Source of the DNA: Polymyxa betae A26-41
Taxonomy: Eukaryota; Protista; Endomyxa: Phytomyxea
Assembly (NCBI GenBank): GCA_003693705.1
Contig: RBZT01000499.1
Span: 186,001-250,000 of the forward strand
Direction: 5' to 3'
DNA: 64,000 nt
Shown piece by piece: positions 13,439 to 36,208 of the stretch. The notes beneath the pieces were generated by a model. That model saw nothing but the letters and a program-made list of their open reading frames with translations, was not told where the DNA came from and searched no databases. The translations under genes and the position numbers were made by a program. Positions within the stretch are counted from its first letter, which is position 1; the number at the start of each line of letters is the position of its first letter.

Positions 13439-13522
13439 GAAATCACTGTCCAAATAAATCATGTCAATTCTAGAGCCACTTGATATCTGAACTGTTAATT
13501 TATGATTGTTCCCGATCCCGAG

Positions 13523-16500
13523 CTAAAGGTGTCCCATGAAATCTTCTTCGACTACTAGCAAAATCAACAGTTTATTAAAAGCATCAAGCTTCGATATTAT
13601 TCTGATCAGATTTAGGCCCCTATTAATTTGTGTCAGTTTCAACTGAAATCATAGGTAAGCAAAACTAATTCGAAACCTGAATGCGAGGTATCGGACCCGA
13701 TTGCCTTTGAACTAATCCTGGCATCGGAGGGATCCTGAGAACTTCTTAGTATAGAATGAAAAAGCAATGATTCGTGTAAACTAACGGATGGCTATACTGA
13801 AGCTCATCTGCATCGTCTAAGCCTTGGTCGAACTCGTCATAAGTCATGTGATGTGCTGGCACTGTTCCAGCTCCAAATTCCTCAAACTCCTAGCTGATCT
13901 TTAGAGATCAAATACAGTTCATTAAGTGAGACCGACCTCGTCACGAATCGTTTTTTTGGAGAGCGACGAATATCCCAAGGCTCCCAGCTTGTATCTGAAT
14001 TTATCCAGACACCAACCAGAACTGCAACTTCAAAACATTATTACAGATGAACGACATATCGGCAATTGAAGCTTACAGATTGCTTTTGGATAGATGTACA
14101 ACCGCAGCCAGAGCAATTGCAACAATGAATAAACTAATGAGAAACGCATGCCCAGTTTTTTTCGGAAACGTTGAGCATGGAATCATTTCCAAATCCCATT
14201 TCTCTCCACCAAAGCATGTATTACCAGGAATACGTCTAAATGAGGTCATTATCGAAGCATCACAGGGTCAACAACCAATACCTATATCCCTTCGTGACTC
14301 GATGGACACCATTTTGGTTGCATTGGTCTTCTATTTTTTGTACGAGATCATCGACAGGTTCACATACATCAGCATTTCGAGCGAATCCAACATCGCATTC
14401 GAAATCGCGATCTGTACATGGACAATCGCCAAGAAATTGACCTACTTGATATGTTTGGGGATTATAGCATTGTACTTCTCTCTTTCGTCTCGTATAGCTA
14501 ACTTTATGGCCCATGATACAGCTAGATTTCCCTCGATCATCTACCGGTGTCCATTCTTCAAAATCAGCTTCTTCACAGACACGCTCATGGAGTCCAGATA
14601 AATCTAAGTGTACGACTATGCCATTTCCGGATGCATCCATGCCATGCAAAAGAAAGGTTTGTGATCCTCCGCTCGGGTCGACAACGATCTTAGAAATTTG
14701 GATTGCGGTTTTTGAAATCTTGACGCGATACCATGATAGCGCTTGATTCCAAGAATAGAGTATATGATCAGTTGGAGCTGTATCTGGAGCCATAACTATT
14801 AAAGCTCCATGATTACCAAACTGGAAAATGTGTGAGCCTTTGGCAACTTGCTGCCATGACAGACCAGCATCACGAGACAAATATGATGCAGTTCCGATAT
14901 CACCCAATGCATCGCCGATGGTTCCAGTAGCCATAAGCAAGCCATAGGCAGATCTTCCACTGTACATAGCACCATATTTGTCGCTGACTCCATGCAGATG
15001 CAAATAGCAATCTTCACTCTGCGAACATGATATCTCATTCCCAAGAGCATCTAGTTTTGGTGGCGATAGATACGACCATATCGCACCCTTATCAAACGAT
15101 ATCGCTGTCCGAACAGAGGCAGTAGATCGGTCGAGTTTTCGACCCATTCCTTGCCAGTGATTAACGATGGCACCAGTCGAATCTTCATGATGAAGATAAT
15201 TTGCAATATAAACGCCTTCCAGTCCAGCAACTCGCTGAAAATCGGCGACTCCTTCCGGAGAGCGACGATTGTTAGGAAGACTTAGTGAGAATTGCATTCC
15301 ACTGGAATCCGACATGTAAACAGAACCCGATGGATCGTTGACGTCCTCATGGTTGATGTGAATAAACACGGATTGCTCAGAAGCATCAACGATCGTGAAC
15401 GACCGCTGTCCGAGAGTGGGAAGGTTCGCTCGAGTAAATTTAGGAAGCTGGTTGAATTCTGGAGCACTGGCATAGAGGTTGATGAGGTGCTGGGCATTTT
15501 TGTCCAAGGCCGCCACTGAAGCATAAATTAAGCGTGAATTCGGCTGAATGAAACTGTTGGCGTTGGCCAGAACCAGTGTAGCTGGCGTAGAAAAATAGTC
15601 TTTCGATGCGAAAAGGTCGATTCCAGAATCGGAAGAAAATGATTGGTCACCGGTCTAAGTAAACACTCAAATTTTGTCGTAACATCAAATATGGAAGGAT
15701 AAATTACCTTAGCCCGATGGATACAAGCAAGTATCGTGTCTTTAGCAGAAATGTCTTGCAGATTTACACGCTGCCAATCAGCGCTGCTGACATAATCTGC
15801 GATTTTGGACCATGATGCACCAAGATCATGACTATAAATAAGCTAAAACCCCAACAGCAGTCAGAACATTACATGACCAGCGGTCGTCGTCTATAACCTG
15901 CTGATAGCACGGCCCTGGTTTCTTCTTCTCTGTCGACGCACATGCCGGCGTCAGTACCAGAGCCAGAAGCCACGACTTCTCATACGGATGGAAATGGAAT
16001 GACGACACCGCCATCTCATCATAGGAGACGAACGTCTCACCACCATTATTGGAAATGAAGCCAGACGGCCCTTTCCCCATCAGCACTACCTGCAAGTAAC
16101 ATAATCCTCAGTCGCCATTTGCCAACAGGGTATCAGAACCATCACTCTACAGCCAAAATCCTATCACAAGAATCGTGTCCCTACCTGTCCATTATCGATT
16201 GGGTTGATCTCGACTCGATCGATTGCAATCGAGCCCGATTTCCTCAGCGATCTCAGGTTGGTTGAGAGGTCAACCCACTTCAGACCGTTATCAGTGCTGC
16301 GATAGACCCGACCCCGGGTCGTCCTCATGAAGACGATACCATCGTTGCCCCATTCGATCTGAGCGATCTCCGATGTGGTTTCCAGCGATGTGACACCAAG
16401 ATTGACTCCTTCTGGGATGTCCAACACCTCCGCCATTGTGCTGTCAGCGCTCCAGGTTTTCGGCTTCTTTCCTTTAGCTATTTGTCAAGGTCAGCAGAGT

Positions 16501-16945
16501 TGCACTTGCAGAAAGTTATCCTCCTGTACCTGGTTGAGCATCTTTCTTGGAATCATCCGGAACTTGATCCGGCTGAGGTTGCTTCTTGGAGATGTCTTGA
16601 ACTTGCTTGTTTGAATCTTGCTGAGGTTGCTGAGGTTGGTTTTTTTTGCCATCTTGATTGGCTTTGTCTTCCTCATTGGAATCGAGGCTTCCTTCAGTAA
16701 CTTCTTTTTCCACCTACCATGTTTCAACGCAGAATTCAAAAGACAACAGAATAACAGAATACCTGATCGACGACGTTATCAACTTCGATGTCGAGCGCCT
16801 TTGCTAACGCTTCCTGGGCTGTTTTCTTCGCAATCCGCTCTCGGACAAGTTTCTCAAGAGCCTTTCGATCAAGATTCGCTTTATTCACTTTCAATCCGCT
16901 TATAAGACCGATTAACAAAAACAGCAGTACGACGATCGCCTTCAT
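13523..16945 (-). CDS. VPS10: VPS10/sortilin-family vacuolar sorting receptor, multi-exon
   Basis: Signal peptide MKAIVVLLFLLIGL, Asp-box repeats (YRSTDNG, SFDKGAIW, LSRDAGLSW), 10CC module (CIMGHKVSYTRRK...CPCTDRDFECDVGF), TM helix and acidic cytosolic tail. Confidence 0.9.
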
Positions 16946-17152
16946 CGCGACACGAAACCCAATTGGATTGTACGTTGCAGCAACAATCAACAGTGTGCAG
17001 TTGAGCAGCTTGCAGTTCTGCTCAGAATCGTCACACACTAACGATTTACGAAAAGTTGGCGCATGTCTAACGAGGAGTTGTCTTTCTACCGGTACTGTAG
17101 AAAGTATCACGGTTGCTGTATAGGGAGAGCAGTCTGATAGAATGAATGTAGG

Positions 17153-18115
17153 TTAAAGTTCTGGGACCTCATTTGGATGTATTTCCGGGTATAATGGAGC
17201 CACAACGAACAGGCTTCTCGTGCCAAGATCAGGAACAACAGGAACAGAGGGCATCAATTTAGCGCCTTTCGCCATCTCACAGATCTTCATGCAATCATAT
17301 CCAAGGCAGTCGCCATCGTGTTCCGGCTTCGACGAAAGCAGATTTCCCGCCAAACCGGCGACATTACTCCAGCAGCAATCCAACGGGGTTGTGAACCCTT
17401 TTAGGATGCTTTTCAGCGCCGGGCTCTCTTGCTGATTTCCATCCCGATCGCGAAATACTCCCAGCGCGTGCAGAGTGAAATCTGTGACATCCAGCCGAAG
17501 CTGACGTTTGTTCATATGAGCAAACTGTACGCCGCAAACTAGTCTTGAAACGGATGCAACCTGCGAATAAATTCGAAGAATATCTTCAGCACAAAAGAAA
17601 CTGTTTCTGATCGCGATGACATGAGTGGCATCATAGGAACGATCCCAAAGCGGCTGCAAATGCGACTTTTCTCCCTCGAGGAAATACACAAACGGGATTC
17701 GCTTGGATTTCAGCAATGATTGGAACATCTCGACCCATGGCGGGGCCAAATCCAGCATCTTGTTAATTGATAACGAGACATGAAGTTCTGCTTTGCCCAA
17801 ACGATCAATTAAAATCATGATTTGGTCGAAAGCATTCCCCATTTGTTCCATTGTTTCGATTTGGACGATAACGAATAGTCTGGAGCCCTCTTTCGGTGAT
17901 GACACTGGGTGTTCAGTTAGACGCATGTGGGAACATACATCACCGAATCTGAAATCCATCCTTGGTTCGTAGATAAAAAAAAATAGCAGAATTCCTAATA
18001 GAACAGCCACAAGAGTGATAAGAATGATTGTCATAACTAGCCCCAACATGCCACAGTGGATACGCCCAATGCTACATATCCTTTTCTTGTTTTTGGCAGC
18101 GTCGTAATGGACCAT
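17153..18115 (-). CDS. CAP59/GT69-like (alpha-1,3-mannosyltransferase-like) type II membrane protein, copy A
   Basis: N-terminal TM anchor; FFCAEDILRI and CCWSNVA resemble GT69 FCxEDILEL and SCWNG; intronless. Confidence 0.6.
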   Translation of the reverse strand: MVHYDAAKNKKRICSIGRIHCGMLGLVMTIILITLVAVLLGILLFFFIYEPRMDFRFGDVCSHMRLTEHPVSSPKEGSRLFVIVQIETMEQMGNAFDQIMILIDRLGKAELHVSLSINKMLDLAPPWVEMFQSLLKSKRIPFVYFLEGEKSHLQPLWDRSYDATHVIAIRNSFFCAEDILRIYSQVASVSRLVCGVQFAHMNKRQLRLDVTDFTLHALGVFRDRDGNQQESPALKSILKGFTTPLDCCWSNVAGLAGNLLSSKPEHDGDCLGYDCMKICEMAKGAKLMPSVPVVPDLGTRSLFVVAPLYPEIHPNEVPEL

Positions 18116-18442
18116 TAACAAGCAGGTGATTAAAGAAAGAGATTCACAAAGCTAACGAAGCAGCATGTAGGTATAAACACAGAAGAACGACCTTAGGGTA
18201 CAATCGAATTTTTGATATCGATCTACGCAAAGCGTGGACAGATAGAGCGGCTTCAAATACTGTATTTCTAATGATTGATATGTGATCATTGGGGTCTAAG
18301 GTTGTATGGAACCGATTTGAGCTTTATCAGGCATTGATATCCATAACGTAAAGGTTTCCATGGTATTGAGCACTGCTGAGAAGCTAAGGTGTATGATACT
18401 AATATTGTCAATAAATAGGAACTTAATCATGCCATTGAAGCT

Positions 18443-18725
18443 TCATAAAGGCAGAGTAAACGCCAACGCAACCTGAGACGATGCATTTGTAGCTGTGGTC
18501 AATTCAATGAAGTTGCCGTAATGGCTGGATCGATACCCGTAAACGACGTGGAGTCTGCGATCATCATCGCTGTCGATCCATACTGATAGACTCAAAAGGA
18601 CGGGAAGGGGACGTCCACCACATCGAGCTAGTTGATAACAAAAGTGTATCACATAATGGACCGAAAATATAGATTCAGGAAGGCATTGGTTGAGGTCAGC
18701 CAGGAATCCGGATGGAATAACCTGA
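18443..18725 (-). pseudogene. Orphan, frameshifted last exon of a dual-Zn2Cys6/PAS gene (duplication by-product)
   Basis: Homologous to 20463-20752 (FHPDSW, CYQLARCGGRPLPVLLS) with frameshifts and no upstream exons. Confidence 0.8.
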
Positions 18726-18767
18726 TGTTGCAATCAGAGTGATCAAGAAAAAAAAATGTGAGTATTG

Positions 18768-19150
18768 ACCTACATGTTCAGCACAGAGTTCAACGTGACA
18801 ACATATTAAAAGAATACCTGATCGACGCCGTTATTTTTTTGCCTTCGATGTCGGACGTTTTGCGAAAGCTTCTAGCGCTGGTTTCTACACAATCCGCTCT
18901 CCGACAAAGTTTCAAGAGTTTCGCTTTCTTCACGTTCAATCGCTTTTAGGACAGTCTGACAAAAAGAAAAACGATCGCCTTCACCGTGACACGAAACCCA
19001 ACTGGATTGTACGTTGCAGCAGCAACCAGCAGTTGTGTTCAGCTGAGCAGCTGCAGTTCGGCTCAGAATGGTCACGACTAACGATTTACGCCTGCGAATG
19101 TTTACAAAGAGTTATCGTTCTACCGGTAGTGAGTACCACGGTAGTTGAAC
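18768..19150 (-). pseudogene. Decayed copy of VPS10 promoter/exon 1
   Basis: Aligns to 16712-17125; start ATG changed to GTG (cac at 18982-18984); several indels. Confidence 0.8.
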
Positions 19151-19181
19151 AGGGAGAGCAGTCTGATTCAATGTTTGTAGG

Positions 19182-20150
19182 TTAAAGTTCTGGAACTTCC
19201 TTAGGATGTATTTCTGGGTATAATGGAGCCACAGCGAACAGGCTTCTCGTGCCAAGGTCAGGAACAACAGGTACAGAGGGCATCAATTTAGCACCTTTCG
19301 CCATCTCGCAGATCATCATGCAATCATATCCAAGGCAGTCACCATCGTGTTCCGGTTTTGATGAAAGCAGATTTCCCGCCAAACCGGCGACATTACTCCA
19401 GCAGCAATCCAACGGGGTTGTGAACCCTTTTAGGATGCTTTTCAGCGCCGGGCTCTCTTGCTGATTTCCATCCTGATCGCGAGATACTCCCAGCGCGTGC
19501 AGAGTGAAATCTGTGACATCCAGCCGAAGCTGACGTTTGTTCATATGAGCAAACTGTACGCCGCAAACTAGTCTTGAAACGGATGAAATCTGCGAATAAA
19601 TTCGAAGAATATCTTCAGCACAAAAGAAACTGTTTCTGATCGCGATGACATGAGTGGCATCATAGGAACGATCCCAAAGCGGCTGCAAATGCGACTTTTC
19701 TCCCTCGAGGAAATACACAAACGGAATTCGCTTGGATTTCAACAATGATTGAAAAATCTCGACCCATGGCGGGGCCAAATCCAGCATCTTGTTAATTGAT
19801 AACGAGACATGAAGTTCTGCTTTGCCCAAACGATCAATTAAAATCATGATTTGGTCGAAAGCATTCCCCATTTGTTCCATTGTTTCGATATGGACAATGA
19901 TCAATAGCCTGGAGCCCTCTTTCGGTGATGACACTGGGTGTTCAATTAGACGCATGTGGGAACAGACATCACCGAATCTGAAATCCACCCTTGGTTTGTG
20001 GATAAGATGTAGTAGCTCAATTCCAAACAGAAAAGCCACAGAAGAGATAAGAATGGTCGTGATACATAGCCCCAACATGCCAAAGTGGATACGCCTCATG
20101 CCACATCGCCATCTCCTTTTTTTGTCTTTAAAAGCGTCGTATTGACCCAT
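19182..20150 (-). CDS. CAP59/GT69-like type II membrane protein, copy B
   Basis: Near-identical luminal domain to copy A; diverged N-terminus/TM. Confidence 0.6.
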   Translation of the reverse strand: MGQYDAFKDKKRRWRCGMRRIHFGMLGLCITTILISSVAFLFGIELLHLIHKPRVDFRFGDVCSHMRLIEHPVSSPKEGSRLLIIVHIETMEQMGNAFDQIMILIDRLGKAELHVSLSINKMLDLAPPWVEIFQSLLKSKRIPFVYFLEGEKSHLQPLWDRSYDATHVIAIRNSFFCAEDILRIYSQISSVSRLVCGVQFAHMNKRQLRLDVTDFTLHALGVSRDQDGNQQESPALKSILKGFTTPLDCCWSNVAGLAGNLLSSKPEHDGDCLGYDCMMICEMAKGAKLMPSVPVVPDLGTRSLFAVAPLYPEIHPKEVPEL

Positions 20151-20462
20151 CAACAAGCAGGTGATCGAATGAAAGGAAGCTCACAATGCTAATGAAGCAG
20201 CATGTAGGTATACGACAGAAGAAAACTTGAGCACTACAGAACACTTTGATAGCTACTGTAAGTACTTACGCAAAGCGCGCACAGATAGAGCGGCTTTCAA
20301 ACTCGACTGAAGTGTGATCGTGACATGGGGTAAATGTTATGTGGAATCTAACTAAGATTTATCAGACATTGTTATCCATGAACCACAGTTATCCATTGGA
20401 ATGAGCTTTGTTTAAAAGGTAAGAAGTATGATAGTAAGACAATGAATAAAATATTAGTGAGG

Positions 20463-21799
20463 TCATAGAGGCAGAGTGAATGCCAACGGAACCTGAGACG
20501 ACGCGTTTGCAGGCTGTGGTAAATCCAATGAGGTTGCCATATCGGTTGGTTCGACAACTGTAAACGAATACTTCGCATGGAAACTGCGATCATGAACTCT
20601 GTCAATCCATATTGAAAGACTCAAAAGGACAGGGAGAGGACGTCCATCACATCGAGCTAGTTGACAATAAAATCTCTGACAAAGCGGACCGAAAAGATAG
20701 AAATTCAGGAAGGCTTTGGATACGGTCAGCCAGGAATCCGGATGGAATAACCTGATGTTGCAATCAGAGAAATAAGTGCAAAATGTAAGCAGTTACTTGT
20801 ATACAAAAGGTAGCAAGTTTGGATTCCTATCAGGAGGATGGATTCCTTTCGATACCGCATCCTTCAGTATATCTGCCGAATAACCAAGAGCACTAAAAGC
20901 AGCAAGATTCATGGTTAACGATGTCCTTCCATTGTTCCGGGAATATACGATTTCTGGACTAGTATGAGAATCAGCTGGTGCCAAAACCTATTACAATGTT
21001 ATATTTTACATTAAACGCCACAACGATTACCTACCTTATCAGGCTCATCAGAGTGAATCATATTGATTCCAGATGCAGAGCGGTGACGGAAACCGTCTGA
21101 TATGATTTGGAAGTAGTCAAATCGACTTCGAAGCTTCTGTATCTCCTCAAAAGGCAATGCCCATTGCATGTCTTCACATATGCTATCACTAGAGCTGCGT
21201 TAGTATAACAGACAGAGCAGAATCTCAAAACGTAACAAACAGTTTTCCGGGCGAGAAAGACAATTCGAGCGCTACCAGCTTGTTGAGAGTATCCGGCCAG
21301 GTAGTCCAAAACTCTCGAACCGATGTAGGGAAAGGTAAAGTGGCAGCCAAAGGCACCTGAAACGTTACTCAGCTGAGGAAATGAAGAGTTATTTGGTCAA
21401 GCCTGGCAATTGGCACAATTGCTCAGCTGACCGTCAAGGTTCCAGTTTACTCACCATCTCACGAGCCCATACTCGAGGGACGTGCTTAGAAATCGGTATG
21501 GTTGATGTCAAACAGGAATGACTTAGACCCAAACGAACACAGCGAGGACATGGCCGTAGTGTGCTGCAGGCTACTTTAGAGTGAGAGCATGCACTGCATG
21601 CTGCCGTCCGCAGCCGTCTTGGACGGTGAAAACCGTTACTGATCTGGCGATCATGGCAAGATTCGTCGATCTCCAGTTTCACGCAGCGGCTGCATGGTCG
21701 GCGTCCATCGCATTTCTGTTTCCGTTCAGCACAGGCAGAACAAGCAACTCGGACTCTGGCTTGCTCGTTCCGACTAGCCTGGACTAGATTTCCAACCAT
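20463..21799 (-). CDS. Dual Zn(II)2Cys6 + PAS-like transcription factor, paralog ZC1
   Basis: Two C-x2-C-x6-C-x5-C-x2-C-x8-C clusters; spliced exons give TMNLAAFSALGYS...FHPDSW...QLARCDGRPLPV; extra intron 21357-21454. Confidence 0.85.
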
Positions 21800-22134
21800 G
21801 GAATCCCTATTCAGTGGCTTGGATCCTAATACGACACATGATTATTGCCGGTATGCAATGAGAAGGATTAGTCAACAACGAGAACGATAGCAGAGTTTGA
21901 CATCCCAGTCACGCAGTTTCCAGAAAGTGCCAGCTTGACTGAAAGTTCGGTCCCATTCATTATTAAATACAGCATACATATGGAAAAAAAGGCTGAAGTC
22001 TTTCTAGTCCAATCGAAGGCAGCTCCTTTCTGATGCAGACTTCGGGCATTCTGTTGTTTAGCGATTCCTATAGAGGGGAGAGATATTGCGGATGCTAATT
22101 AGAACAATTTTTGATAGACCCGACTGTAGCGGAA

Positions 22135-23383
22135 TCAATTACTGTCTGGACCATGCAGTACTGGTGTATCTGAGATCTGGGAAGGCTCACATGCCAAATC
22201 CTCAGTATTCTCAACTGCTAATACTGCCAATGTTGTGCCTACAGCAGGCGGGTCGGCGATTGTAAACGAATACGTCGCACAGAAATTGCGACGTTTATCG
22301 CTCCAGGCTGAGAAAGTCAGAAGGACAGGAATTGGGAGGCCATCGCATCGAGCAAGTTGGCAGTAAAACTTTTGGCATACAGGGCGGAATAGATAGTAAT
22401 TTAAGAACGCTTTCGAGAGAACCACCCATGAATCCGGATGAAACATCCTGGTGTCATTGCTTAGGATTACCAAAGCATAAGCCGGCTGCCTTACTTGTAT
22501 ATAAATGGTAAAAAGTCTGGATTTCTATCGAAACCATGAACCCCATTTGTCACTGCATCCTTTATTATATCTGCTGAATAGCCCAGCAAACTGACAGCCG
22601 CATTGTTCATTGTCAATGACGTCGTTGGCTGTCCATTTCGAGAATATCGGAATTGTGGTGTTGCAATAGAACTTGTGGCAAAATCCTACTATAAAGTTTA
22701 ATAGAATGACACCGCACTATAATAAAAACGATGACCTGGTTAGAGTGCACCATGTTAATTCCAGAAATCGAACGGCGACTGACTGATTCAAGTATTCGGG
22801 AATAGTCAAGTCGATTTCTAAGATTTTGAACCTCATCAGGATGCAGCGCCCATCCAATGCTCACGCAGAGTTGATCCCTAGAAACCAATTACCAAAGAGC
22901 TAAACAGTAAACAAAAACTAACAATCTCTCAGGCGATAAAGCTAATTCTAACGCTACCAGCTTATTGAGAGTGTCTGGAAAGGTCATCCAAAAATCTCGA
23001 ATCGAACGAGGGAAAGGTAGATTCATGGCCAAAGGAACCACTTCCCGAGCCCACATTCGAGGAATGTATTGTCTCATTGGCAGAGCTGGTGCTACACACG
23101 AATGGCCCAGACCTAAACGAACACATCGCGGGCATGGCCGGACCGCACTGCAAGCGACTTTGGAATAAGAACATGCAGCGCATGCTGGCGCTTTCAGTCG
23201 TCTCGAACGGTGGCACCCGCCGCTAATTTGACGATCTTGACATGAATCGTCCCGTTTGAGGCCAATACAGCGACTGCAGGGTCTTTGGCCATCACATCTC
23301 TGTTTTCGGGCAGCACAAGTGGAACAAGCGACCCGGACCTTGCACCGCTCGCTTCGGTTGGCTTGGACCAGATCCGAACCCAT
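22135..23383 (-). CDS. Dual Zn(II)2Cys6 + PAS-like TF, paralog ZC2
   Basis: CSTCAARKQRCDGQRPCSRC and CAACSYSKVACSAVRPCPRC; last exon FHPDSW...CQLARCDGLPIPV. Confidence 0.85.
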
Positions 23384-23749
23384 TTAGAATGAAGGAATTC
23401 GGACTCAGAAAATTCCGAATCACCCTCTGATGGCAAAGTGGAGGAATACTTTGTAACATCAACGTGCCAAGTAAACGCAGCCTGTCCCCTGCGTAAAGGA
23501 GAGAATAACCGGCGATTATCTAAGCGAAAGGTGCCAATCAGAAGTCCAAAACTTTCTGCATCCGTTTGGTTCAGGCGGTTGATTGTTTCCGTTATATCTG
23601 CAGCTAATATCTGTGTCTGCCATACTGCCCGAAATGAAAAGCTTCGCACTAATATAACAGGATACACACGAATCCAATTATGTATGCTTTTTAGAAAACA
23701 ATATTCATATATAGGTTATGAAATTTAAAAGAAAAGGAATTAAACACAA

Positions 23750-23997
23750 TTAGAATGTCTTTGAATTGACCACAGCGTGTGGTTCTACGATTGTGAATGA
23801 AAACGTCGTCGCATGGATGGTGCGGTATTGATCTTTATCCAACCAGGCTGAGTACCTCACATGGACAGGAATAGGACGACCATTACATCATGCCAGTTGA
23901 CAGTACAATTTCTGATGAACTGCACTGTAAGTTGGATGATAAATTAGAAATTTAAGATTGCCTTCGAAAGCTCCAGCCATGAATCCGGATGAAATAC
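23750..23997 (-). pseudogene. Orphan last exon of a dual-Zn2Cys6/PAS gene with stops and frameshift
   Basis: Translates FHPDSWLELSKAILNF*, then in another frame HQKLYCQLA*CNGRPIPV. Confidence 0.8.
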
Positions 23998-24606
23998 CAA
24001 ACCTCCAGTTACGCACTTAAATAATACTCGTATGTTTTTATAGCAGCTTTCCAACAATCTTTCTATTTTATCTGGGATTGATCCAAAAACGCAGGTGTTT
24101 ATCCGTCATCTTTCAAACCTGAAAAAATATACAAAAAATCTCATTTCCAAAGATTTAAATACCCACCCCCTTAACAAAATCCTGAAGCAAAAACCAAAAA
24201 TCCAATACCCCAACAAAGGTATAATTCGAATAAACAACCCCCAATAACTTCAAAACATCCAACATGTATAAATATCTTGTGATATAACTGACTAAATATT
24301 CATTGATTGACTATCCATTTTTTTCCAAATTGATTAATACTTTCTCCGTTTCCTTTTTCTCATGTCATTAGTAGCAACCGCTTCCTGACTTCATCAAAAA
24401 TACAATTTTTGGCTGTCCCGAAAACGATCCACAACTTTCATTGTCGGGAGCAGATTCTGAAGTTTAAAACCGGGCTATTAGACTATCGTTCTATGGGCGA
24501 GCAGGGCAGGCATCACTAAATACAGCGTATGACATAATTGCCATCTGAATTGAAGGTTTGGTCCAGCAGACTGTTTAGTTAGGGCCTCAACAAATCCAAA
24601 ACCTAA

Positions 24607-25801
24607 TTAACAACCTTTGCCATCAATAGGAAATTTTGAACTCGACGAGTCGCAGACGGCTGAGCGTTCTGCTATTGTGAACGCAAAGGAGGCTCGGTAA
24701 ACGCCCTCTTTGCTGATCGTTCCTGTGAGACTCATGTGGACAGGAAGAGGACGGCCATCACACCGTACCAGCACAGAATCAAACCTCTGACATATCACTG
24801 ATGGGAAGAGATAGAAGTTTAAGGCCACATGGGAGAAAACTACCCAGTTATCTGGATGAAAAAAACTGTAACCTTAAGTTAGGACGAGTTAGAGTATAAT
24901 GAAATTGTTACTTGTAGACGAGTGGGAGAAAGTTTGGATTGTTATCAGCAGCATGGACTCCCTTACTCACTGCGTCTTTCAAAGCATCTTCTGAATAGCC
25001 AAGTAAAGCACGAGCCGCATCGTTCATGCTCATCCATGTGCATGCACCATCTCGGAGATACGAGAATTCGGGACAATCGGGAACTCGGGGAATTGCTTTA
25101 GGGTCCTAAAATTGATTGGTTTTTACAGTACCATTACATGAGATACCTACCTGAATGCATTCAATCGTATCACCTAAACAAAGCGGGGATTGATTGTTAG
25201 CTTGTGAATGTGATACTATCTCCAGAGAATTCAATGTTCTACGAAGGTTCATTATGTCTTCAGGAAGAACCGCCCACGACAGTTTCTCGCAGAGTCTATC
25301 ACTGAAACAAGATTATTGAAAGCACTGAGAAGAAGATGCAACAGACATTCCCTCAGGCGACAAGGCCAATTCGAGTGTTACGAGAGGATTGAAGAATTTT
25401 GGCCAATTGATGAAAAATTCTCGAACGGATCGCGGAAAGGGAAGAGTAAGCGACAATGGCGCCATCTCACGAGCCCAGATTCTGGATATATGTGTAGGTG
25501 TCAGCAAATTTGATGCTACGCAAGCGAGGCTTAATCCCAAACGAACACATCGAGGGCATGGCCGCCCTTGACTACAAGCGACTTTGGCATGCGAACATGC
25601 ATTACAGGCGGTCGTCCTGAGACGACGGCGAGCACGGCGACCGCCGACGCCAAACTGGCGATCTTGACAGGAATCGGCTATTTGGAGCTTGATACATCGA
25701 CTGCATGGCCGTTGATCATCACATCTGAGTTTGCTTTCAGCACAAGCTGAACAAGCAACACGGACCCTGCTTCTTTGTGAAACACTTTGAAATGAAATCA
25801 T
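24607..25801 (-). CDS. Dual Zn(II)2Cys6 + PAS-like TF, paralog ZC3
   Basis: ORF 25313-25801 with two clusters; downstream exons MNDAARALLGYS, FFHPDNW, RCDGRPLPV. Confidence 0.85.
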
Positions 25802-26179
25802 TTGGATTGGGCACTAGTCGGGGGAACCCGATCCGCGATAAGATTTGCGACTGTGGACATCTACCCGTGATGAGTTAAGTAACCCGGAGACCCTATCGGC
25901 CTATCCCAAGTTGCATCTTTAATGAAGGAAGTGAACCATTCCTAAACTGAAGTGTTCAAATCGATCGTTCCAAAGCAAACATGCTTCATGAACGATCAAC
26001 ATGCGTAATGAAACTCGGGAAGTCTTTCTAGTAGATGGGAATACAACCAGAGCAAAGCAAAAAATCTGTGCTGATTAATAAAGTGCTATTGTATATTCCC
26101 CCAACCCCAAAGGTCTGAGAAATAATTGCAAATAGCTGCAATCAGTAGACCGAAGACGTGGGATATTAGTCCCTTGATA

Positions 26180-27477
26180 TCAGAACAACGAAAAAAATAT
26201 GTATTGAAAAAAATTGTTAAGAATATCATTCACGGCAGACCCCATCCTGAGCAGCCGATGAGACATCTGTAAAACCAGAGGGAAAATTAGAATCTGTACT
26301 GAGGTAGCTAGTGCAGTGGCAATAGAGGGCGTGTCTGTTGGAGTAAAGGAATATGTCGAATAGAAATTGAGATCGTTATCGACATGCGTTGAGGCAGTCA
26401 TATAGACAGAGAGAGGACGACCATCACTACGTGCGAGTTGGCAGTAAAATTTTTGACCTATAGGAGCATGGAGATAGAAATTTAAGATCCTCTTGGAATT
26501 GACTAGCCACGAATCCGGATGGAATAACCTGACGTCATGAGTCAGGATTCTTCGTATGGGTAGGATTGTGTATCATACTTGTATATCAAAGGCAATAAAT
26601 GCGGGTTTTTGTCAACGGGATGGATCCCCTTTGACACCGCATCCTGTAAAACGTTTGCTGAGTAACCGAGCAACAGGGAAGCAGCAAGGTTCATGGTCAA
26701 TGAAGTATTTTCTCCATTTTGATAATAAACCACTTGTGGCGTATCCGAAGAAATCGGCGTCAGGTCCTATCACAACGACCTTTCTTAGATTAAAACACTA
26801 CGTTATTATTGAAAATTTACCTGAGGAGAACGTACCATTTCAATATCAGACGTAGCAAGGAGAGGGCAGCGCTCCGATTGAATTTGATAAAAATCAAATC
26901 GCTCAAGAAGCTGTGCAATTTCAGATTGAGGGAGAACCCACATTAATCCCTGACATATGCCATTCCTATCAAAACATTACGGAATGAACTTGAAAATCCA
27001 AAGCAAAACGGACAATTTTTTGGGTGCCAAGGTCAATTCGAGTTTCATAAGTTTGCTGATAGTATTGGGCCAGTTGATCCAAAATTCTCGAATCGACTGT
27101 GGAAAAGGTAAATCAGTAGTTAGCGGGATCATCGAGACTGCTATTAGGTGTGGGATACGTGTGGGCTTAGATACAAAGGCGTTCACACATGTTAGACCCA
27201 GCCCCAAACGAACGCACCGAGGACATGGTCGCACTGTGCTGCAAGCGACTTTAGAATGAAAGCATGCACTACAAGCTGGCGTCCGCAGACGCTTTGTGCG
27301 ACGACAGCTGGTGCTAATCTGGCGACTTTGGCACGATTCGCCTCGTTTTAGGTTAACACATCGGCTACATGGCCGTTGCCCATCGCATTTCTGCTTTCTT
27401 TCAGCGCAGGCAGAACAGGCGACCCGGACCTTTGCACGCTTGGTTCGACTAGCCTGGACAAGCACCGGCGCAAGCAT
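26180..27477 (-). CDS. Dual Zn(II)2Cys6 + PAS-like TF, paralog ZC4
   Basis: MLAPVLVQASRTKRAKVRVAC..., two clusters, TMNLAASLLLGYS, FHPDSW, QLARSDGRPL; 3' end approximate. Confidence 0.85.
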
Positions 27478-27587
27478 ACGGAAGAGACGACCCGATTTAA
27501 CCAACGAAAGGTAACAAATAACAAGCTCAAGCTGAGCATTGAAAAATTGCGTGACATAATATTGTTTAATCAGGACCTGGACGTCCA

Positions 27588-28186
27588 TTGACCTAGAGTA
27601 CAACTGACCAATGCCGGCAATGCGCACAACAATTTGATCAACTCCGCACGCAGTTTATTTTGACCTACAGGTACTTTGACCTATAATACGGACATTTAAC
27701 TGCGACCTGAAAATTGACCTACAGGCTACTGCTACAGCCACCATTTGGACCTACAAATTGACCTACCGGTATTTACACCGTGGAGGATTTTATTTAAAAG
27801 TCGAATTAATAAATTTTGGAGGAGTGTCTGACTCTTCCGAATGCCGCTTGAAAACAACGAATTTCCTGGCGCCATACGATATATTGTGTTGTTGTTTAAA
27901 CCACATCAATGTACATGCAAACCATGCTTCAAAAATGGTTGAAAACATTGCATAAAAACATGCAACTGCGCCTGATAATAATTGTTGAAAGTAAACGAAC
28001 CAGTGAAATCCAATCCAAGACTGAAATAATAATGTAAGCGGAGCGATCTGCAAAAATTTGTCAGGCACGCTTTCGCGAAAGCAATAGGTTTTAGGGTTTG
28101 TAGGTCAATTTGTATTTTGTAGGTCAAAGTGGTGACGGTAGGTCAATGTGTAGGTCTCTACGGTAGTGGTACAGTACAAAGGTCAA
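27588..28186. mobile_element. Putative non-autonomous foldback/MITE-like element with oppositely oriented TGACCTAC repeat arrays
   Basis: (T/G)GACCTA(C) at ~27589, 27661, 27677, 27715, 27747, 27759; reverse complement GTAGGTC at ~28100, 28119, 28138, 28150; imperfect inverted arms; no TSD identified. Confidence 0.55.
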
Positions 28187-28419
28187 GATTAGTCTTGTTA
28201 ATAAAAAATAGGCTCGGTCATCGGCAGGCCTCTTTTATATACGGGCCGATCCGTAAATTTTGACATTTATTTATCAGTTAATCCCTAAAAGTTGCTGTTT
28301 ATCAAACTGTAGTCATTTAAATACAAAATCGAAAATTAAGTCCAAACAAATTTGCGTCAAGTCACGGAATTTGTTCAGACCTAAATCCGGTCTGGAAAAA
28401 TTATTTACGTCAAGGTTTT

Positions 28420-29090
28420 GAATGCTGTGTGGTTGTGGAAGTCATCCAGTGAGATTCTTCTCTTTCTATCTCTACGGATGGCTTGATCAAACCTGGTTAG
28501 TCACTGCATCAAATATCGAGCGCCCGGATGATGATAAAATACTGAAGAAGTTCATTCTGCCGAGACTCCAATTATTTGAGATATCCCGATTGATTTTTAC
28601 GCCACATTTAGAACAGATCATGTACCAAGGATCTACCGATTGTCGTTTGAACTGAGCACATTGAAAGAACATCTCTGCTGTGATTTCGGTTGTTCCGGCT
28701 TTAGCTACCACTTGATGCAGTGATCAATGAGGATTGGACATCCAGTCCTCATGATATCGTTGCACGAGATTATATGGCAAACTGATAGGATAACAGTTGA
28801 TAACTTTTGTTGAACGCTGGTGGATCCGGGTCGATTTCAAGAGATCGACAGATATGTGCTTGTATTTATAAAATCGAGCATGAATTCAGCATCGTGCCTT
28901 GGACACAAACATGTTGATTAGAACGTTCGCGTTTGTGCATTAGAAGTCCTCTTTTAAACCGATACAATACGATTGAATCTTTCATATTGGTAGCGGATGA
29001 TCATCCTCCATCTGCACTGCTGATATAGGAATATTGAACTTGATATTGGGCACATTCAGTGCATTATATGCTCGTGTACAGATGCTAAAT
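28420..29090 (-). pseudogene. Degenerate reading frame, possibly a TnpB/Fanzor-like nuclease C-terminal relic
   Basis: About 200 codons in one frame with only about 4 stops, including ...QCAQFKRQSVDPWYMICSKCGVKINRDI (Zn-ribbon/RuvC-III-like CxxCG-x3-NRD). Confidence 0.25.
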
Positions 29091-29894
29091 CTGCAAAAAC
29101 ATCACAAAATTATGTACCAGTAAAATGGATGTACTCGGTTTCTGGAGTTCGCACAGCGACGAGATAATCAGAAAAAAATACGCAACAGGATGCAGCCGTT
29201 CGACCTAGTTTGTCGAAAGCAAAGGGAACTGGTCACAAAAGCACATCGTTGATCATCCTGGCAATCAAATTGTAGCTATGAAATAGCTTGAATTTATTGA
29301 TTAAAGGACGTCAAGGCAGGTGGAATGGTAGAATTGGCTTCAGGAGTTAAAGGAATGGGCGTCAATCTTTGTTTCTGGCCTGAAAGTTCTCAAGATCAAC
29401 GACATCAACTACTTAGTTGCTGCTTGATATTGTATTAATTTATCTGTCATTTCACCGGCGCTCTTTTATCGCATTCAGCTGCTGCTGTTGGGCAAAGAAA
29501 GATCCCAGACAGAGAGTTCGCTTGTCTTTTAGAATCGTGATCCAGTAAGGTCAAGGGAGTTCAACAGAGTTCTTAGTAGTACTATAGCATGGCAATCCAT
29601 CTGCTGTACTTTTATAAATTGCAAGAAAACCGGAGCGAGCAATTTCCTGATTGGTTCTATTTGCTATTAGCTCTCGGACGGCACTTCCCTCCAATCCAAC
29701 AATTTGCCAATGTTAACAAATGTATTCCCGATATTCTGGAACTAATTCAGAAATGGCCAAGAATTGGATTTGGCAGCGCCGCCTGTTGATCCTTTTCAAA
29801 CACACAATTTCATTCCATGCAGTTTGCCATAGGAACGAAACGTCTAATTTCACCAGAAGTGCCTTAGAAATTACAGTGTAACTTCAACATCTAT

Positions 29895-31086
29895 TCAAGG
29901 GCATACAATTCCTTGCGTAGGAGTGCTGATAATGGAAGAATTGGATGGAGCAGGACGTTCTACCATCTTAAATGTAAACGTCGCTCGATAAACGCCGTCT
30001 TTACTAATCGAAGCTGCGAGAGTCGCCTGGACAGGAAGTGCCCGACCATCACATCGTGCAAGTTGGCAGTAGAACGTCTGACAAGTTACGGATGGATGAA
30101 GATAGAAATTCAAGACCACGTTGGAATATGTGACCCAAGAATCCGGGTGGAAGAAACTGAAAAACGATTATCATTTAGAGCAGTGAAGTTTACGATTGAA
30201 ATTGTTACTTATAGATAAGTGGAAGGAAGTTTGGATTATTATCAGCGGGATGAATTCCATTTCTCACTGCATTGTTCACTGCATTTGCTGTATAGCCAAG
30301 CAACCGAAGACCGGCGCTATTCAAGGTAATCGAGGTGCCCGTGCGATCTCGAAAGTATGACATTTCTGGAGCGTCAGGGACGCTTGAAATCGTTGTACAA
30401 TCCTATAGACAGATCAATCAAAGTGAAGAATTTACGAAGACTGACTGGTTCACTTCATAGCATTCAATGGTATCGTCTAAACAATTTAAATGGTGATTGG
30501 ACCCTTCTGATATAAATTCCAACGAATCAAAACCTCTTCGTAGGATTTCCATATCATCAGGAAGCACCGCCCATGTCATTATGCTATAAAGTCTAACCCT
30601 GATATCAATTAGAGAGAGCATCAAAACCAAGAACGCAGCGAACAGTTTTTCAGGCGATAACGCCAAATCAAATATCACATTCGAACTGAGGAGTTTCGGC
30701 CAGCTAATCCAGAACTCTCGAACAGACCGCGAAAACGGCAGAGTAAGCGCTAAAGGTGCCATTTCACGAGCCCATACTTTAGGTGTTAGCAAACTTGATG
30801 CAACGCAAGCGAGACTCAGCCCCAGTCGAAAACAACGAGGACATGGCCGTTCTTGGCTGCAAGCGACCTTGGCAAACGAGCATGCACTGCAGGCGGCCGT
30901 TCGCAGACGATCTCGACGAGGACGACGCCTGGAGTTTTTCTGTCGGTCTTGGCAGGAGCCGTCTATCTGGAGCTTGAAGCAGCGGGCGCATGGACGCTCC
31001 CCATTACATCGTACTTTGCTGCCAGCACAAGCTGAGCATGCAATAAGGACCCTCTCTCTTGGAGGTGGACCTCAAACCAGGATCAT
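29895..31086 (-). pseudogene. Dual Zn(II)2Cys6 + PAS-like TF, paralog ZC5, in-frame TGA at codon 5
   Basis: ATG ATC CTG GTT TGA (31086-31072), then an open frame through both clusters and intact-looking downstream exons. Confidence 0.7.
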
Positions 31087-31419
31087 GTTGTTCAGCAATG
31101 AGCACGGAGACCTGATCTGTGTTAAACGGAACTGAGCGCACCCAACTCCTCCATGGTATCATACAGTTGCAGGCCGTACTCAGGCATTCACAACAATCCA
31201 TACAAGCTCCAATTGAATGAAAAAACCACCAATAAGCCAGAGCAGATACGGCTGAGAACTCAGAATTGCCAACATTACGCTCAATAAAATCTTGTCAATC
31301 CACAGTTTAATTTCGCACCTATAGTTATGTTTATGAATGCGTTGGTGTCGAGATAGAAACATTCTGGAAGCATAACATTGGATAGCAAAAGTATAACCGT
31401 TTTGGTATGCAGTATCCAG

Positions 31420-32236
31420 TCAGTGATCGAAAAAAAACACGGAATCTGGGACAGAGGGAGAGCCGGCGGCAGCAAATGAGAAACTGGTTTTGACACTCTG
31501 ACTGTAGGAAGAGACTGTTATATTGACAGGAAGGGGACGACCATCAGATCTCGCTATGGTCTGTACAAGAGAAACTTGAGGATTAGGTTGGAAAGGGTCA
31601 GCCATGAATTGGGATGGAAGATAATGATAATCGGAGATCATCAGAATCCTGCAAATGTAAGCAGCCTATTCCTTACTAGTATAGAAAGGCCCACACAGAT
31701 TACAGAGTGCTCAAGGTTAATGGCAAAAAACGACAATCCTTCAGGCCACAAAGCCAGATCAAGCGCGATCATCGGGTTCCAACGATCGTGGGCCAGCTAA
31801 CCCAGAATTTTCGCGAGCGCTGGAACGGTAATGCGATCTGCAAGGGCGACATTTCCCGAGCCCATAATCGAGGGATAGAGCCGGTTATAGTCCAAACTGG
31901 TGCCAAAAATGATCGACATAATCCCAGACGAAGAAGGCCGTCCACTGCTTCAAGCCGTTTTCGCATACGAACAGGCATCGCAGGCTGATAATCGCAACGG
32001 CGTCGAAGGCGACAATTGCTCGAACGGTCTTGGCAGGAATCGCTGATCCCAACGTTCGCACATCGTCTGCATGGACGCTGTCCATCACATCTCGACTTCC
32101 TGTATACGATAAGCACATGAGCTTCAGTGATGATCGATCAACGTCAACAAAAAATGACCTTGAAGCGCAGGCAGATGAGGCGATCCCACACCCTTGAAGA
32201 ATGAGATGATAATAGAATAGTCGGCTCGGCGATCAT
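31420..32236 (-). pseudogene. Decayed dual Zn2Cys6/PAS paralog ZC6
   Basis: First Cys lost (IASSAC), frameshifts in cluster 2, middle exons deleted, last exon retains IARSDGRPLPV. Confidence 0.8.
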
Positions 32237-32659
32237 ACCGCAGATCACTGCTGATCACGTCTTCTACAAACCCTACTTCTGCCCACTCAATTCCAACTTT
32301 GCTGGAAGCGAATTGATTGCGATTGCATACGTTGGTGTTGATAACGGCCCTTGGACGACATAACTGATATCAGGTATGTGGTATCGGAGGTGGTTGATAA
32401 ACGAAATGCCCATTGGTTTGATGGTTGACATTTGAATAGCGTTTGATAGGGCAGAGCTACTGCTGAGTCAGGACCAGAGCCTAATTATGGCATGATGAAC
32501 CCAAAGCAATCCTAACTTCTTGCATAGTTCAATTGAAGGAGACGGGTTAGCAATTCGCGAATGCGTTCAAATTAACGAATTGCAGTTAATTGGGATCAGG
32601 TTGTCGCTCTGCTAGAATAGCTGGAGGAGAGAAGGCTATGTATTAAAATATAAACACGA

Positions 32660-33864
32660 TTAAATAAGAGTTTTGTCATGGGCTAAGATGGCGAGAGAAG
32701 CAGGTACAGCAGTAGGCTGAGCAATGGTAAACGAGAATGTGGCTCGAGCTGCGCGTGGTGAGATTGAGACGACCATGTGGACAGGTAGAGGACGACCATC
32801 ACATCGTGAGAGCTGGCAGTCAAATTTCTGAACCGGTAGAGGCATTTGAAAGGGAATCGTTTGACATGAAGCCAGTAAGAAGGAGACATAAATATGTAAG
32901 ATGACATTAGACAGGATCAGCCATGAATCAGGATGAAAGAAACTGGATTCGTTAAGAGAGAGATCCGGCCATGAATCAAATATTCTTACTTATAGATGAC
33001 GGGCAGAAAGTTATAATTTTTATGTATAGGATGGACACCCGACATGGCCGCTTCCTCCAGATCTTTCTCTGAGTATCCGAGCAGGCTGAGAGCGGGCCTA
33101 TTCATGCTGACGGCGTTGCCTGAACCCGTTCGATAATAAGAGAATTCGGGAGTCCCAGGAGGCATCGGCCTCATTTCCTGATAGAAAACCCGTCAAATGG
33201 ATATCCGATGCAGACGCGAGAAGGCACCTGAACATATTCAATCATGATATCAACAGAATCGGAATCGCAAATCTCATAGTCCGATGCTATTTGGAACGTG
33301 TCGAACTGACTTCTAAGATTGCCAAGCTGATCAACAGGAACGGCCCATTGCAAGGCACCGCACAGCATATCCCTAAGCAGGACATTACAGAAAGCGAGGC
33401 AATCAACAGCGATCGAACAATGATTCCGGCGACAGCGCCAGATCCAGCGCCTCCGGCTGAGTGAGCGATTTTCGCATGTTGAGAAAGAAATCGCGAACGA
33501 ATTCAGGGAAAGGCAAGGTGAGGGATAAAGGCGCCATCTGACGAGCCCATACTCGGGGAACACGTCCAGATAGCTGCAAACTGGATGCAACACATTCGAG
33601 ACCAAATCCCAAGCGAGAGCAGCGAGGACATGGTCGTTCGGTGCTGCAAGCGACCTTGGCATACGAGCAGGCGCCGCACGCGGCCGTTCGCAAGCGCCGA
33701 GACCGACGACAGCCGGCGGATTTCAGGCGATCCTGGCAGGATTCGACGATCTGGAGATGAACGCAGCGGCTACACGGGCGCTGCCCATCGCATCTGAGCT
33801 TGGTTCTCGCACAGGCCGAACAGGCGATCCGGACCCTTCGACAGTTGCTGGGACGCGGGATCAT
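32660..33864 (-). CDS. Dual Zn(II)2Cys6 + PAS-like TF, paralog ZC7
   Basis: ORF 33403-33864 with two clusters; SMNRPALSLLGYS, FFHPDSW, QLSRCDGRPLPV. Confidence 0.85.
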
Positions 33865-34964
33865 CAGACTGTCTCGGAACGGGAAACCCCAACCTGTCCG
33901 AGTGTGCGGGATGGGCTAGTACAGTTATAGCGCGGCTCCTGGCTGCAAACTTCCCGGAGCCTTCATCAAACAGCAGTGAGTCTATTCGGAGTTCGTATTT
34001 CTTTGTTAGGAACAATCTCGTGCAGGCGCCGGTTCGTCGTCAATGAAGGCTGTAATTTTAACTTATCGCCTTTATAACGTGTCGCTGCATTGGAGATGCA
34101 ATTGGGTTTGTGCGGTTCGGCATCTTCCTGGGTGGCCATGGCAAAGGTATCAAGAGTAAGGGCAAGAATCTCTACAATGGATATCATCAGGTAGATTATT
34201 CAACTGGATTTGGGATCCCCGATGGGCAAAGATCTATTGAAGTAGCCGTAGCCGATATTCGGCCATTGCCAAGCTCGTTGTTCGCCATCTCTGGCTTCTT
34301 GCATATAATTATGGCAAACTGACAAAGATCGTAGTGCATTTGCTGAAGCTGCGGGTGTATAAGAGCAACCTTAACAATGCTAGTTGATTAAAACATGCGA
34401 AGAGCAGTCGTAGATTGACAGTTCCAAATCTAGGGAAAGATTCGAATCGATTACTATCATGACGCTCGAGGCAGACATAATCACATACTGATTAGAGGAG
34501 TCAACAGAGATGAAGCCAAATACAGCTATGATGCCAACATAACAGGCCTTTATCTCTCTATGTGTTGCTGCAGCCTTCTAAAAGAGGTTTTCGCAATGCG
34601 AACTTGTCAGGGCGCATGGCTGCCACCGCCCGCCCGCAAAACCTGATGCAACTGATCCTAATCTAACGGTGTCGTTAACTAAACACTCGTCAGCAGCCGC
34701 AATGGTTACAACGTGGACAGGCCAGCTATCGACATTCGCTTGTTCGGCGCAAGCACCGTGCTGAAAGTAAGATGACTCTTGTGTCGGCTGGATTATAAGA
34801 ACAAAGGGCTGGACATCTATGGATGGCGAATGAGGTCAGCTTTCCTTCAATTTACTGGACTTTAAATAGTAACAATATCATAGATCTCAGTAGATAGGCT
34901 CACAGAGTTATTTGCAATTGGTATGGTTTGTTTAGGAAATTTACAAAATCAAAAGGAAATCTTG

Positions 34965-36208
34965 TCATGATGGTTCATCAGGCGGAGGAAGGGCTAATAA
35001 TGTGTCGGGTGCAGCGGGTGGATCAGCGACCGTAAACGAAAGGCTCACCCGAAAATCTTTCTCATAACCTTTACCCCCAATCCAGACTGACATCGTCATA
35101 TGAACAGGAACAGGACGTCCATCACATCGTGCTAATTGGCAGTATAATTTCTGAAATAGCGGCTGGTACAGATAGAAATTTAATATAACGTTCGAGAGAC
35201 TCAGCCAGCTATCTGGATGGAAGAGCCTATGAGATTGATCAGTTCCGAACCATGACCAGAATTTCATAATCTGACTTGTAGATGAAAGGTACAAAGTCTG
35301 GATTGTTTTCAATGCAATGGACTGATTTTAGTACAGCTTTCTTTAAAGTGTCAGTTGAATAACCAAGCACACTACAAGCGGGCGCATTCATGGTGATGGA
35401 TGTCTTATGGAATGCATCCGGTGCATGATTTCGAAAGTAAACGATTTGTGGCGTTCCCGGTTGATGAAGCGTCGGTGAGAAATCCTATCGCAACAGTTAG
35501 TTTGAAGATTCAGTGATGATATTCACATGACAAATGAGACCTCAATAGGCAGTATCATGCTATTTACAGATTGTGATACAAGGTCTTCATGATCAGCTAA
35601 GACTTTATAGCAATCGAAGTGCTTGCGAAGTTTCTGCAAATCGGGACCAGGTAAAGCCCATAGCAGAGCATCACAGACGCCGTCCCTGAATAATTGTTAC
35701 AGAAAGTCATATTGATGTCCGATTAAGCAACGAACAATCGTTCAGGCGACAAAGCCAGTTCGAGGGCGACGAATGGATTCAGAGATTTCGGCCAGTTGAG
35801 CCAAAACTCTCGTAGCTTATGCGGGAACGGTAAAGCGACTGCCAAGGGCACCATTTCATTAGCCCAGACCCGACGGGTAAGCTTGGGTTTCTGTACAACA
35901 CTGGATGTCACACACGAATATACCATGTTTAGACGAACGCAGCGCGGGCAAGGTCGCAAAGCGCTGCATGCGACTTTTGAGTATGAGCAGGAAGTGCAAG
36001 CTGCCGTCTGTAGACGATGGCGGGGTCGGCGACAATCATGATTGTTAGCAGGGCGATCTTTGCAGGACCCGGCTAATCGGAATTTAACACATCGGCCGCA
36101 TGGGCGCTGTCCATCGCATCGCAGCTTCCGTTTAGCACAGGCTGAGCAAGCGATCCGAACCCTGCGTCGATCGCTCCGAGCCGGGCCAATGCTCGGAGCG
36201 AGAACCAT
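34965..36208 (-). CDS. Dual Zn(II)2Cys6 + PAS-like TF, paralog ZC8
   Basis: MVLAPSIGPARSDRRRVRIAC..., two clusters; TMNAPACSVLGYS, LFHPDSW, QLARCDGRPVPV. Confidence 0.85.

Follow-up and report, generated by a model that had tools for sequence, protein, structure and literature searches.

A tandem array of genes for double zinc-cluster, PAS-fold regulators in Polymyxa betae

The window analysed here, 64,000 nucleotides of the Polymyxa betae A26-41 genome (contig RBZT01000499.1, positions 186,001 to 250,000, G+C about 45%), carries between its positions 18443 and 36208 a head-to-tail array of 10 co-oriented units, all on the minus strand and spanning about 18 kb. These units are complete or decayed copies of genes, here called ZC, for predicted transcription factors, each protein combining a pair of Zn2Cys6 clusters with a helical cap and a PAS fold. 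Seven copies are old and held by purifying selection. We consider a division of roles among these maintained paralogues to be the most likely explanation, with somewhat better than even chances, since the copies are kept by purifying selection and differ in their spacers, linker, tails, one PAS strand and promoters.

P. betae is an obligate parasite of beet roots and the vector of the rhizomania virus. More generally, plasmodiophorids are unculturable parasites of crop roots and vectors of viruses, and to our knowledge almost nothing is known of how they regulate their genes. Seven maintained regulators of sensor type are thus concrete candidates for control by life stage or host signal. Moreover, half-site spacing and PAS function in the ZC family bear on how a regulator with one chain and two clusters works.

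Layout and selection in the array

A repeat search combined with maps of open reading frames (ORFs) and frames recovered, from 18.4 to 36.3 kb and solely on the minus strand, ten copies of the last exon and eight of the first; the direct-repeat families lie on a single strand with a spacing of 1.5-3.6 kb. Splice models were built by enumerating GT..AG pairs from the coordinates and then joining the exons; exons were searched singly, and the joined models entered the alignment, the codon analysis and the tree. Seven models, with four or five exons each and products of 342-381 amino acids (aa), could be spliced without an internal stop, and their three core introns (45-56 nt) occupy identical alignment columns in the same phases (2, 0 and 2) in 7/7 copies. 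Such an array is not explicable by chance, since exon-1 profile matches within it reach E 1e-58 to 1e-82. The original prediction had described about ten co-oriented minus-strand units over some 18 kb, with six intact-looking genes, one gene with an early stop (ZC5), one decayed gene (ZC6), two orphan last exons and shared core intron positions; count, strand and coordinates were confirmed, as was this inventory by splicing and frame maps, and the intron positions proved to be shared as described.

Amino-acid identity between copies is 42-60%, and synonymous divergence (dS) is saturated at 1.3-2.5. All pairs, also those that involve ZC4 and ZC5, have a ratio of nonsynonymous to synonymous divergence (dN/dS) of 0.18-0.33, and the value of 0.20 for ZC3-ZC5 indicates that constraint is not relaxed. 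One could argue that most copies are silent or heading for loss, as the wrecked ZC6, the two orphan exons, the stop at codon 5 of ZC5 and the fact that the window copies are known from DNA alone might suggest; this is very improbable, because seven frames of 342-381 codons have stayed open despite the saturated dS, all pairs, those with ZC4 and ZC5 included, show an omega of 0.2-0.3, and 12/12 zinc-binding cysteines are kept in 7/7 copies.

Constraint varies along the protein. Mean pairwise identity reaches 69% in the first zinc cluster (Zn1), 72% in the second (Zn2), 47-52% in the PAS exons and 30% in exon 2. Maximum-likelihood (ML) omegas, obtained under GY94+F3x4 on a fixed tree of seven sequences, are 0.12 for Zn1, 0.16 for Zn2, 0.35 for the region that follows the clusters, 0.31 for exon 2, 0.30 and 0.26 for PAS exons 3 and 4, respectively, and 0.30 for the whole protein. 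The zinc clusters are indeed the most conserved domains, as originally proposed, but the particular emphasis then put on cluster 2 finds no echo in the ML values, which are lower for Zn1. Similarly, the strong variation attributed to the linker exon and to the PAS residues between the core motifs is borne out by the ranking of identities, but not for the D-E loop with Ealpha, Falpha and Gbeta, which are nearly frozen. Mapping of the variable sites to the secondary-structure elements of the PAS fold gave omegas of 0.07 for the D-E loop and Ealpha, 0.18 for Falpha, 0.06 for Gbeta and the G-H hairpin, 0.18 for Ibeta, 0.41 for Abeta/Bbeta and 0.81 for Hbeta (12 codons). Ealpha, Falpha and Gbeta are hence as constrained as the zinc clusters. 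In a sliding 12-codon scan, Hbeta and the H-I loop account for the top three values of the protein (0.70-0.81, still below 1), and lesser peaks mark the N-terminus, the disordered linker and the stretch preceding Abeta; most of the variation is found in the disordered linker, loops and tails. A site-wise grid resembling fixed effects likelihood (FEL) and covering 342 sites (p<0.1) returned beta<alpha at 119/342 sites and beta>alpha at 8/342; 2/8 of the latter are in the PAS domain, below chance expectation. The grid thus gave no surplus of sites under positive selection.

These values bear on the proposal, made from the first reading of the sequence, that all copies bind the same DNA sites and that their PAS pockets have diversified for different small molecules, so as to form a receptor-like repertoire acting on one regulon. 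The strong conservation of the clusters agrees with it, as does the relative freedom of Abeta and Bbeta (0.41), and the peak omega of the protein (0.7-0.8) does fall on a core strand of the PAS fold, Hbeta, and on the H-I loop, although the fit is weak. However, per-domain omegas and the site-wise grid do not point to diversified pockets: omega remains below 1 everywhere, the PAS exons (0.26-0.30) do not exceed the post-cluster region and exon 2 (0.31-0.35), and beta>alpha was obtained at only two PAS sites, fewer than expected by chance. The D-E loop with Ealpha, Falpha and Gbeta usually wall a PAS pocket, and it is precisely these segments that are nearly frozen (0.06-0.18). We therefore hold such a repertoire to be distinctly unlikely.

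Protein architecture and the division of roles

Pfam PF00172 matches two stretches in every exon 1, scoring 35-50 bits where the cut-off is 21, and the pattern C-x2-C-x6-C-x5-C-x2-C-x8-C of the Zn2Cys6 family occurs twice per chain. The 12/12 zinc-binding cysteines invariant in the seven copies are also invariant across the wider family, and in each cluster the lysine three residues before the third cysteine never or hardly ever varies. We take its position to be that of Lys18 in the Gal4-DNA structure; the half-site-reading lysine is kept in almost all Zn2Cys6 proteins. The ZC proteins thus resemble Gal4-type proteins in the cysteine pattern, present twice, and in this lysine. The inter-cluster spacer, from the last cysteine of cluster 1 to the first of cluster 2, measures 19-21 residues with 51% identity between copies. 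In Gal4-type proteins the linker sets the spacing of the sites, and since the inter-cluster spacer of the ZC proteins varies in length and sequence, one shared DNA target cannot be assumed. By analogy with the Gal4 family, such variation would usually shift site spacing, a further point against a single regulon.

The C-terminal half was modelled on a relative, L021, a contig resembling a spliced messenger RNA (mRNA) that is described below. The part of its product that starts at the end of exon 1 (P0113), folded with an alignment (A3) that includes window exons 3 and 4, yielded an AlphaFold model with a mean predicted local distance difference test score (pLDDT) of 80 and a predicted template modelling score (pTM) of 0.72, in which a helical cap is followed by beta-beta-alpha(4)-beta-beta-beta. 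Foldseek returned 152 PDB matches at E<=1e-3 for this model; among those listed, all are PAS, LOV or heme-PAS, with a probability of 1.00, a best E of 5.6e-6 and target template modelling scores (TM) of up to 0.68. Similarly, a shape search of the Atlas aligned residues 96-226 to PAS clusters with a root-mean-square deviation of 2.9-3.5 A over 104-123 residues. On the basis of the model and of both structural searches, the predicted PAS fold is real. Its sequence has diverged very far: exons 3 and 4 searched singly gave weak PAS hints in Pfam (E 0.1-0.3), full-length L021, P0113 and P0003 (a Spongospora relative) gave no match to Pfam PAS, PAS_3, PAS_8, PAS_9 or PAS_13 even at E<=10, and the domain thus falls outside these Pfam PAS families at their gathering thresholds. 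Identification as LOV or heme-PAS by sequence was tried and rejected (best PDB profile match at E 0.15). The motifs that the original prediction had singled out as conserved, GYS, FHPDSW and R-C-DG, match generic structural motifs of PAS domains.

The full-length model of L021 (pLDDT 77) displays two confident small clusters, a low-confidence spacer after each of them and the C-terminal cap-PAS module, with no long coiled coil. The exon 2 product, at first regarded as a linker, forms a confident cap helix in its first half, and disorder and freedom to vary are confined to the second half. Unlike Gal4-type proteins, the modelled L021 chain thus has no long coiled-coil dimerisation helix, and a second cluster stands where the cluster of the dimer partner would be. 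Aureochromes and White Collar share with the ZC proteins a one-component layout, a DNA-binding domain joined to a module of PAS fold, and the aureochrome LOV domain is among the fold matches. However, the DNA-binding domain of the ZC proteins is of another type, and no LOV sequence was found at E<=10 in the PDB profile search, which leaves them outside the LOV photosensors. The D-E loop/Ealpha segment reads N-P-[ND]-[FL]-L-P in six copies and N-Y-N-F-L-P in ZC7, and the cysteine that forms the flavin adduct was found there in none of the copies.

Among characterised families, the closest is that of AcuK/AcuM (Rds2, Ert1, Gsm1, Aod2/Aod5, Rse2/Rse3, Pas2), small regulators that likewise join an N-terminal Zn2Cys6 cluster to a C-terminal PAS domain, and whose paralogues, by analogy, would be expected to read paired CGG-type half-sites as the ZC proteins might. 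The ZC proteins are similar in layout and depart from the family in cluster number and in the PAS sequence model. All copies and their relatives have two clusters per chain, whereas AcuK/AcuM have one; AcuK/AcuM are fungal and their genes are known as separate paralogues, whereas the ZC genes stand in a tandem array of a rhizarian parasite and their PAS domain lacks a Pfam match at threshold, PAS_13 included. A variable hotspot on the PAS beta-sheet, a common interface of PAS domains, could suggest that the cap-PAS module is a pairing surface, on which the copies form homo- and heterodimers like AcuK/AcuM or Rds2/Ert1/Gsm1 and in which Hbeta sets the choice of partner within a combinatorial network. 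A precedent exists in AcuK and AcuM, whose joint function requires the C-terminal PAS and whose heterodimers bind CCGN7CCG (PMC12719309). However, pairing is not needed to reach two half-sites, because each ZC chain already holds two clusters, and the ZC PAS domain does not match PAS_13, the marker of a fungal Zn_clus-PAS cluster of the Atlas. A network of this kind is, in our view, rather unlikely.

Under the preferred reading of divided roles, the ZC genes would be a subfamily of transcription factors that is specific to its plasmodiophorid lineage and was amplified in tandem. Each chain carries two complete Zn2Cys6 clusters with a flexible spacer of 19-21 residues between them, then a second flexible segment and a compact cap packed with the divergent PAS domain. 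A single chain may thus read two CGG-type half-sites through its two clusters, the coiled-coil dimer of fungal zinc-cluster proteins would not be needed, and the role of the cap-PAS module would be to gate or partner the protein. The paralogues differ mainly in spacers, disordered linker, tails, one PAS strand and promoters, and would divide roles by timing, half-site spacing or partner, rather than serve as interchangeable sensors for one regulon. A search of the regions upstream of the seven genes detected no common promoter motif or CGG-pair pattern and no 7-mer common to at least five of the seven; the absence of a common 7-mer fits a predicted divergent regulation of the copies.

Several points weigh against a division of roles. 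ZC5 has a TGA at codon 5. Genomic sequence is the sole source for the window copies; their expression, copy by copy, is putative, and so are their DNA targets, their oligomeric state and any ligand. The site tests have low power, because dS is saturated and only seven sequences are available, and the Hbeta hotspot, with its omega of about 0.8, could hide true diversifying selection. With these points taken into account, we would consider divided roles first, then a network of pairing PAS domains, then a repertoire of sensors for one regulon, and last a mostly dead array.

Relatives, turnover and a second array

Genome-wide searches (1001 contigs, 27,085,814 bases) confined the subfamily to this array within P. 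betae, according to its profile, and a few distant double-cluster genes are dispersed singly on other contigs. Among 1.84 billion representatives, an exhaustive profile search found only three proteins below 1e-30, namely P0001 and P0002, which are exon-1 ORF calls from environmental or Sequence Read Archive (SRA) assemblies, and P0003, a full-length Spongospora protein. P. brassicae, Spongospora and Logan contigs also hold remoter members of this layout, and the closest named proteins belong to Spongospora subterranea and Plasmodiophora brassicae. A homologue search with P0003, P0113 and ZC2 exon 1 added almost nothing new in a collection in which relatives are barely sampled. In P. brassicae, the relatives P0024 and P0006 each occur singly, next to unrelated genes. 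Many matches of the profile search, for example P0004, P0009 and P0056, are metagenomic proteins with 4-6 Zn2Cys6-like stretches per chain; judging from these, multi-cluster proteins may be common outside fungi.

L021 is a contig of 1180 nt from sample SRR29421802, with one frame open from base 1 to 1074 and a product 54% identical to ZC8. It reads uninterrupted through both clusters, the linker and the PAS domain and across all three exon junctions, as the spliced mRNA of a relative would, which supports the splice model and shows that a close ZC8-like relative is expressed. In an ML tree of the seven window copies and their relatives (support given as paired values), the seven copies form a clade with L021, P0001 and P0002 (98/98) that has P0003 as its sister. 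Within it, L021 and P0002 join ZC8 (96/91), so that orthologue-like relatives exist in other samples; ZC1, ZC2 and ZC4 form a second clade (99/98), and ZC7, ZC3 and ZC5 a third (100/98). Since these clades are interleaved along the chromosome, the copies have not been homogenised, and the copying of neighbours cannot have been the only way in which the array grew.

The birth-and-death evolution proposed from the outset is supported: anciently diverged paralogues (dS 1.3-2.5) in interleaved clades coexist with the wrecked ZC6, two orphan exons, a fresh stop in ZC5 and a 2-kb duplication of 83% identity. The array is thus an old one that still turns over at its edges. Unequal crossing-over would be the most likely route of its growth, given the head-to-tail layout and the 2-kb duplication. 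This tandem duplication (16712..20769, minus strand), which extends the 3' end of the array, was recognised by blastn, which aligned 16712-18739 with 18768-20769 at 83% identity over 2066 columns, and by repeat families D7, D10, D12 and D15-D18. Both of its copies hold a last exon of ZC and an open CAP59-like glycosyltransferase ORF (322 and 324 aa), whose Pfam CAP59_mtransfer score of 26.8 bits is just under the cut-off of 28.8. Orphan last exon A lies within the duplication, which thereby created one of the two orphan exons.

Tandem expansion is not restricted to P. betae. A Logan contig of 70 kb (L022, sample DRR671455) bears at 5062-13538 seven co-oriented, head-to-tail double-Zn2Cys6-PAS genes that are intronless and 28-66% identical to one another, gene 4 (8631-9788) having a truncated PAS domain. 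Synteny with the ZC array was ruled out, as the neighbours of the L022 array lack counterparts in the window and the counterpart of its sestrin neighbour is on another P. betae contig. Both arrays have co-oriented copies with two zinc clusters and a PAS domain, as well as a broken copy; unlike the ZC array, that of L022 is intronless, belongs to a separate clade (100/100) and has other neighbours. Owing to this separate clade and these different neighbours, the L022 expansion is considered independent, which implies that tandem expansion with decay has occurred at least twice in the family. The view that such an array is unusual for so compact a genome loses ground with this second array, which makes that of P. 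betae less singular and the family itself more interesting. Outside fungi, too, a doubled "fungal" zinc cluster with a fused PAS domain is thus an architecture that works, and two or more independent tandem expansions of it have taken place. It is also conceivable, albeit improbable, that double-Zn2Cys6-PAS proteins are one-component-like regulators of Rhizaria that repeatedly expand in tandem, and that in Polymyxa the fast-evolving Hbeta face of the PAS sheet adapts every copy to its own signal from host or soil, or to its own partner, which would yield a small sensory repertoire. The source genome of L022 is very compact, and a further family member, P0021, is found on another contig (L040) of sample DRR671455.

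Individual genes and their surroundings

All features of the array are on the minus strand. At its 3' end, orphan last exon A (18446-18723) is a frameshifted copy of ZC1 exon 4, with tblastn matches in two frames, the best to ZC1. ZC1 (20463..21799) encodes 364 aa in five exons (21799-21455, 21356-21241, 21188-21035, 20987-20797 and 20751-20466, then TGA). Its additional intron (21357-21454, GTGAGT...CAG, 98 nt, phase 0) is about twice as long as the other introns of the family and is found neither in any paralogue nor in the L021 mRNA; its removal restores the conserved ...WAREM|VPL..., and it looks like a recent intron gain. An origin from an introner-type repeat was ruled out, as no second copy is present in the genome. 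ZC2 (22135..23383), with Zn_clus matched twice (39 bits), encodes 368 aa in four exons (23383-22923, 22877-22736, 22685-22495 and 22447-22138). It is followed by orphan last exon B (23762-23997), which contains a frameshift and stops, and by ZC3 (24607..25801), which encodes 352 aa in four exons (25801-25347, 25301-25151, 25105-24912 and 24865-24610). ZC4 (26180..27477; 381 aa; exons 27477-27014, 26965-26821, 26766-26579 and 26528-26183) is the most divergent of the open copies and has a longer tail.

ZC5 (29895..31086) begins with an ATG at 31086 and reads ATG-ATC-CTG-GTT-TGA, the stop occupying 31072-31074; the exons after it (31071-30644, 30598-30454, 30402-30209 and 30156-29898) comprise 342 open codons, and no later in-frame ATG was found upstream of cluster 1. 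The ZC6 pseudogene (31423..32137) retains a frame-broken remnant of exon 1 (32101-31778) and one of exon 4 (31619-31423), exons 2-3 being deleted. ZC7 (32660..33864) encodes 353 aa in four exons (33864-33419, 33372-33228, 33177-32990 and 32942-32663) and has an in-frame insert of 14 codons (42 nt, 32846-32887) in the Falpha-Gbeta loop of its PAS domain. A canonical intron was rejected here, as the insert starts with GT but ends with CAA instead of AG, and the sole in-frame GT..AG options would remove conserved residues. ZC8 (34965..36208) encodes 362 aa in four exons (36208-35736, 35685-35541, 35484-35276 and 35226-34968).

The spacers at 27480-29897 and 33865-34967 contain no detectable ZC remnant, Rfam family or short tandem repeat, and the former, a 2.4-kb stretch between ZC4 and ZC5, has no long ORF and no similarity to the remaining window. 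The neighbours of the array are ordinary genes, namely those for sortilin/Vps10, FYVE, pantothenate kinase, cyclophilin and TIP49 proteins. The sortilin gene, for instance, has a large exon at 14263-15516 on the minus strand with Sortilin/Vps10 (E 2.5e-67) and Sortilin_C (E 1.8e-33) domains.

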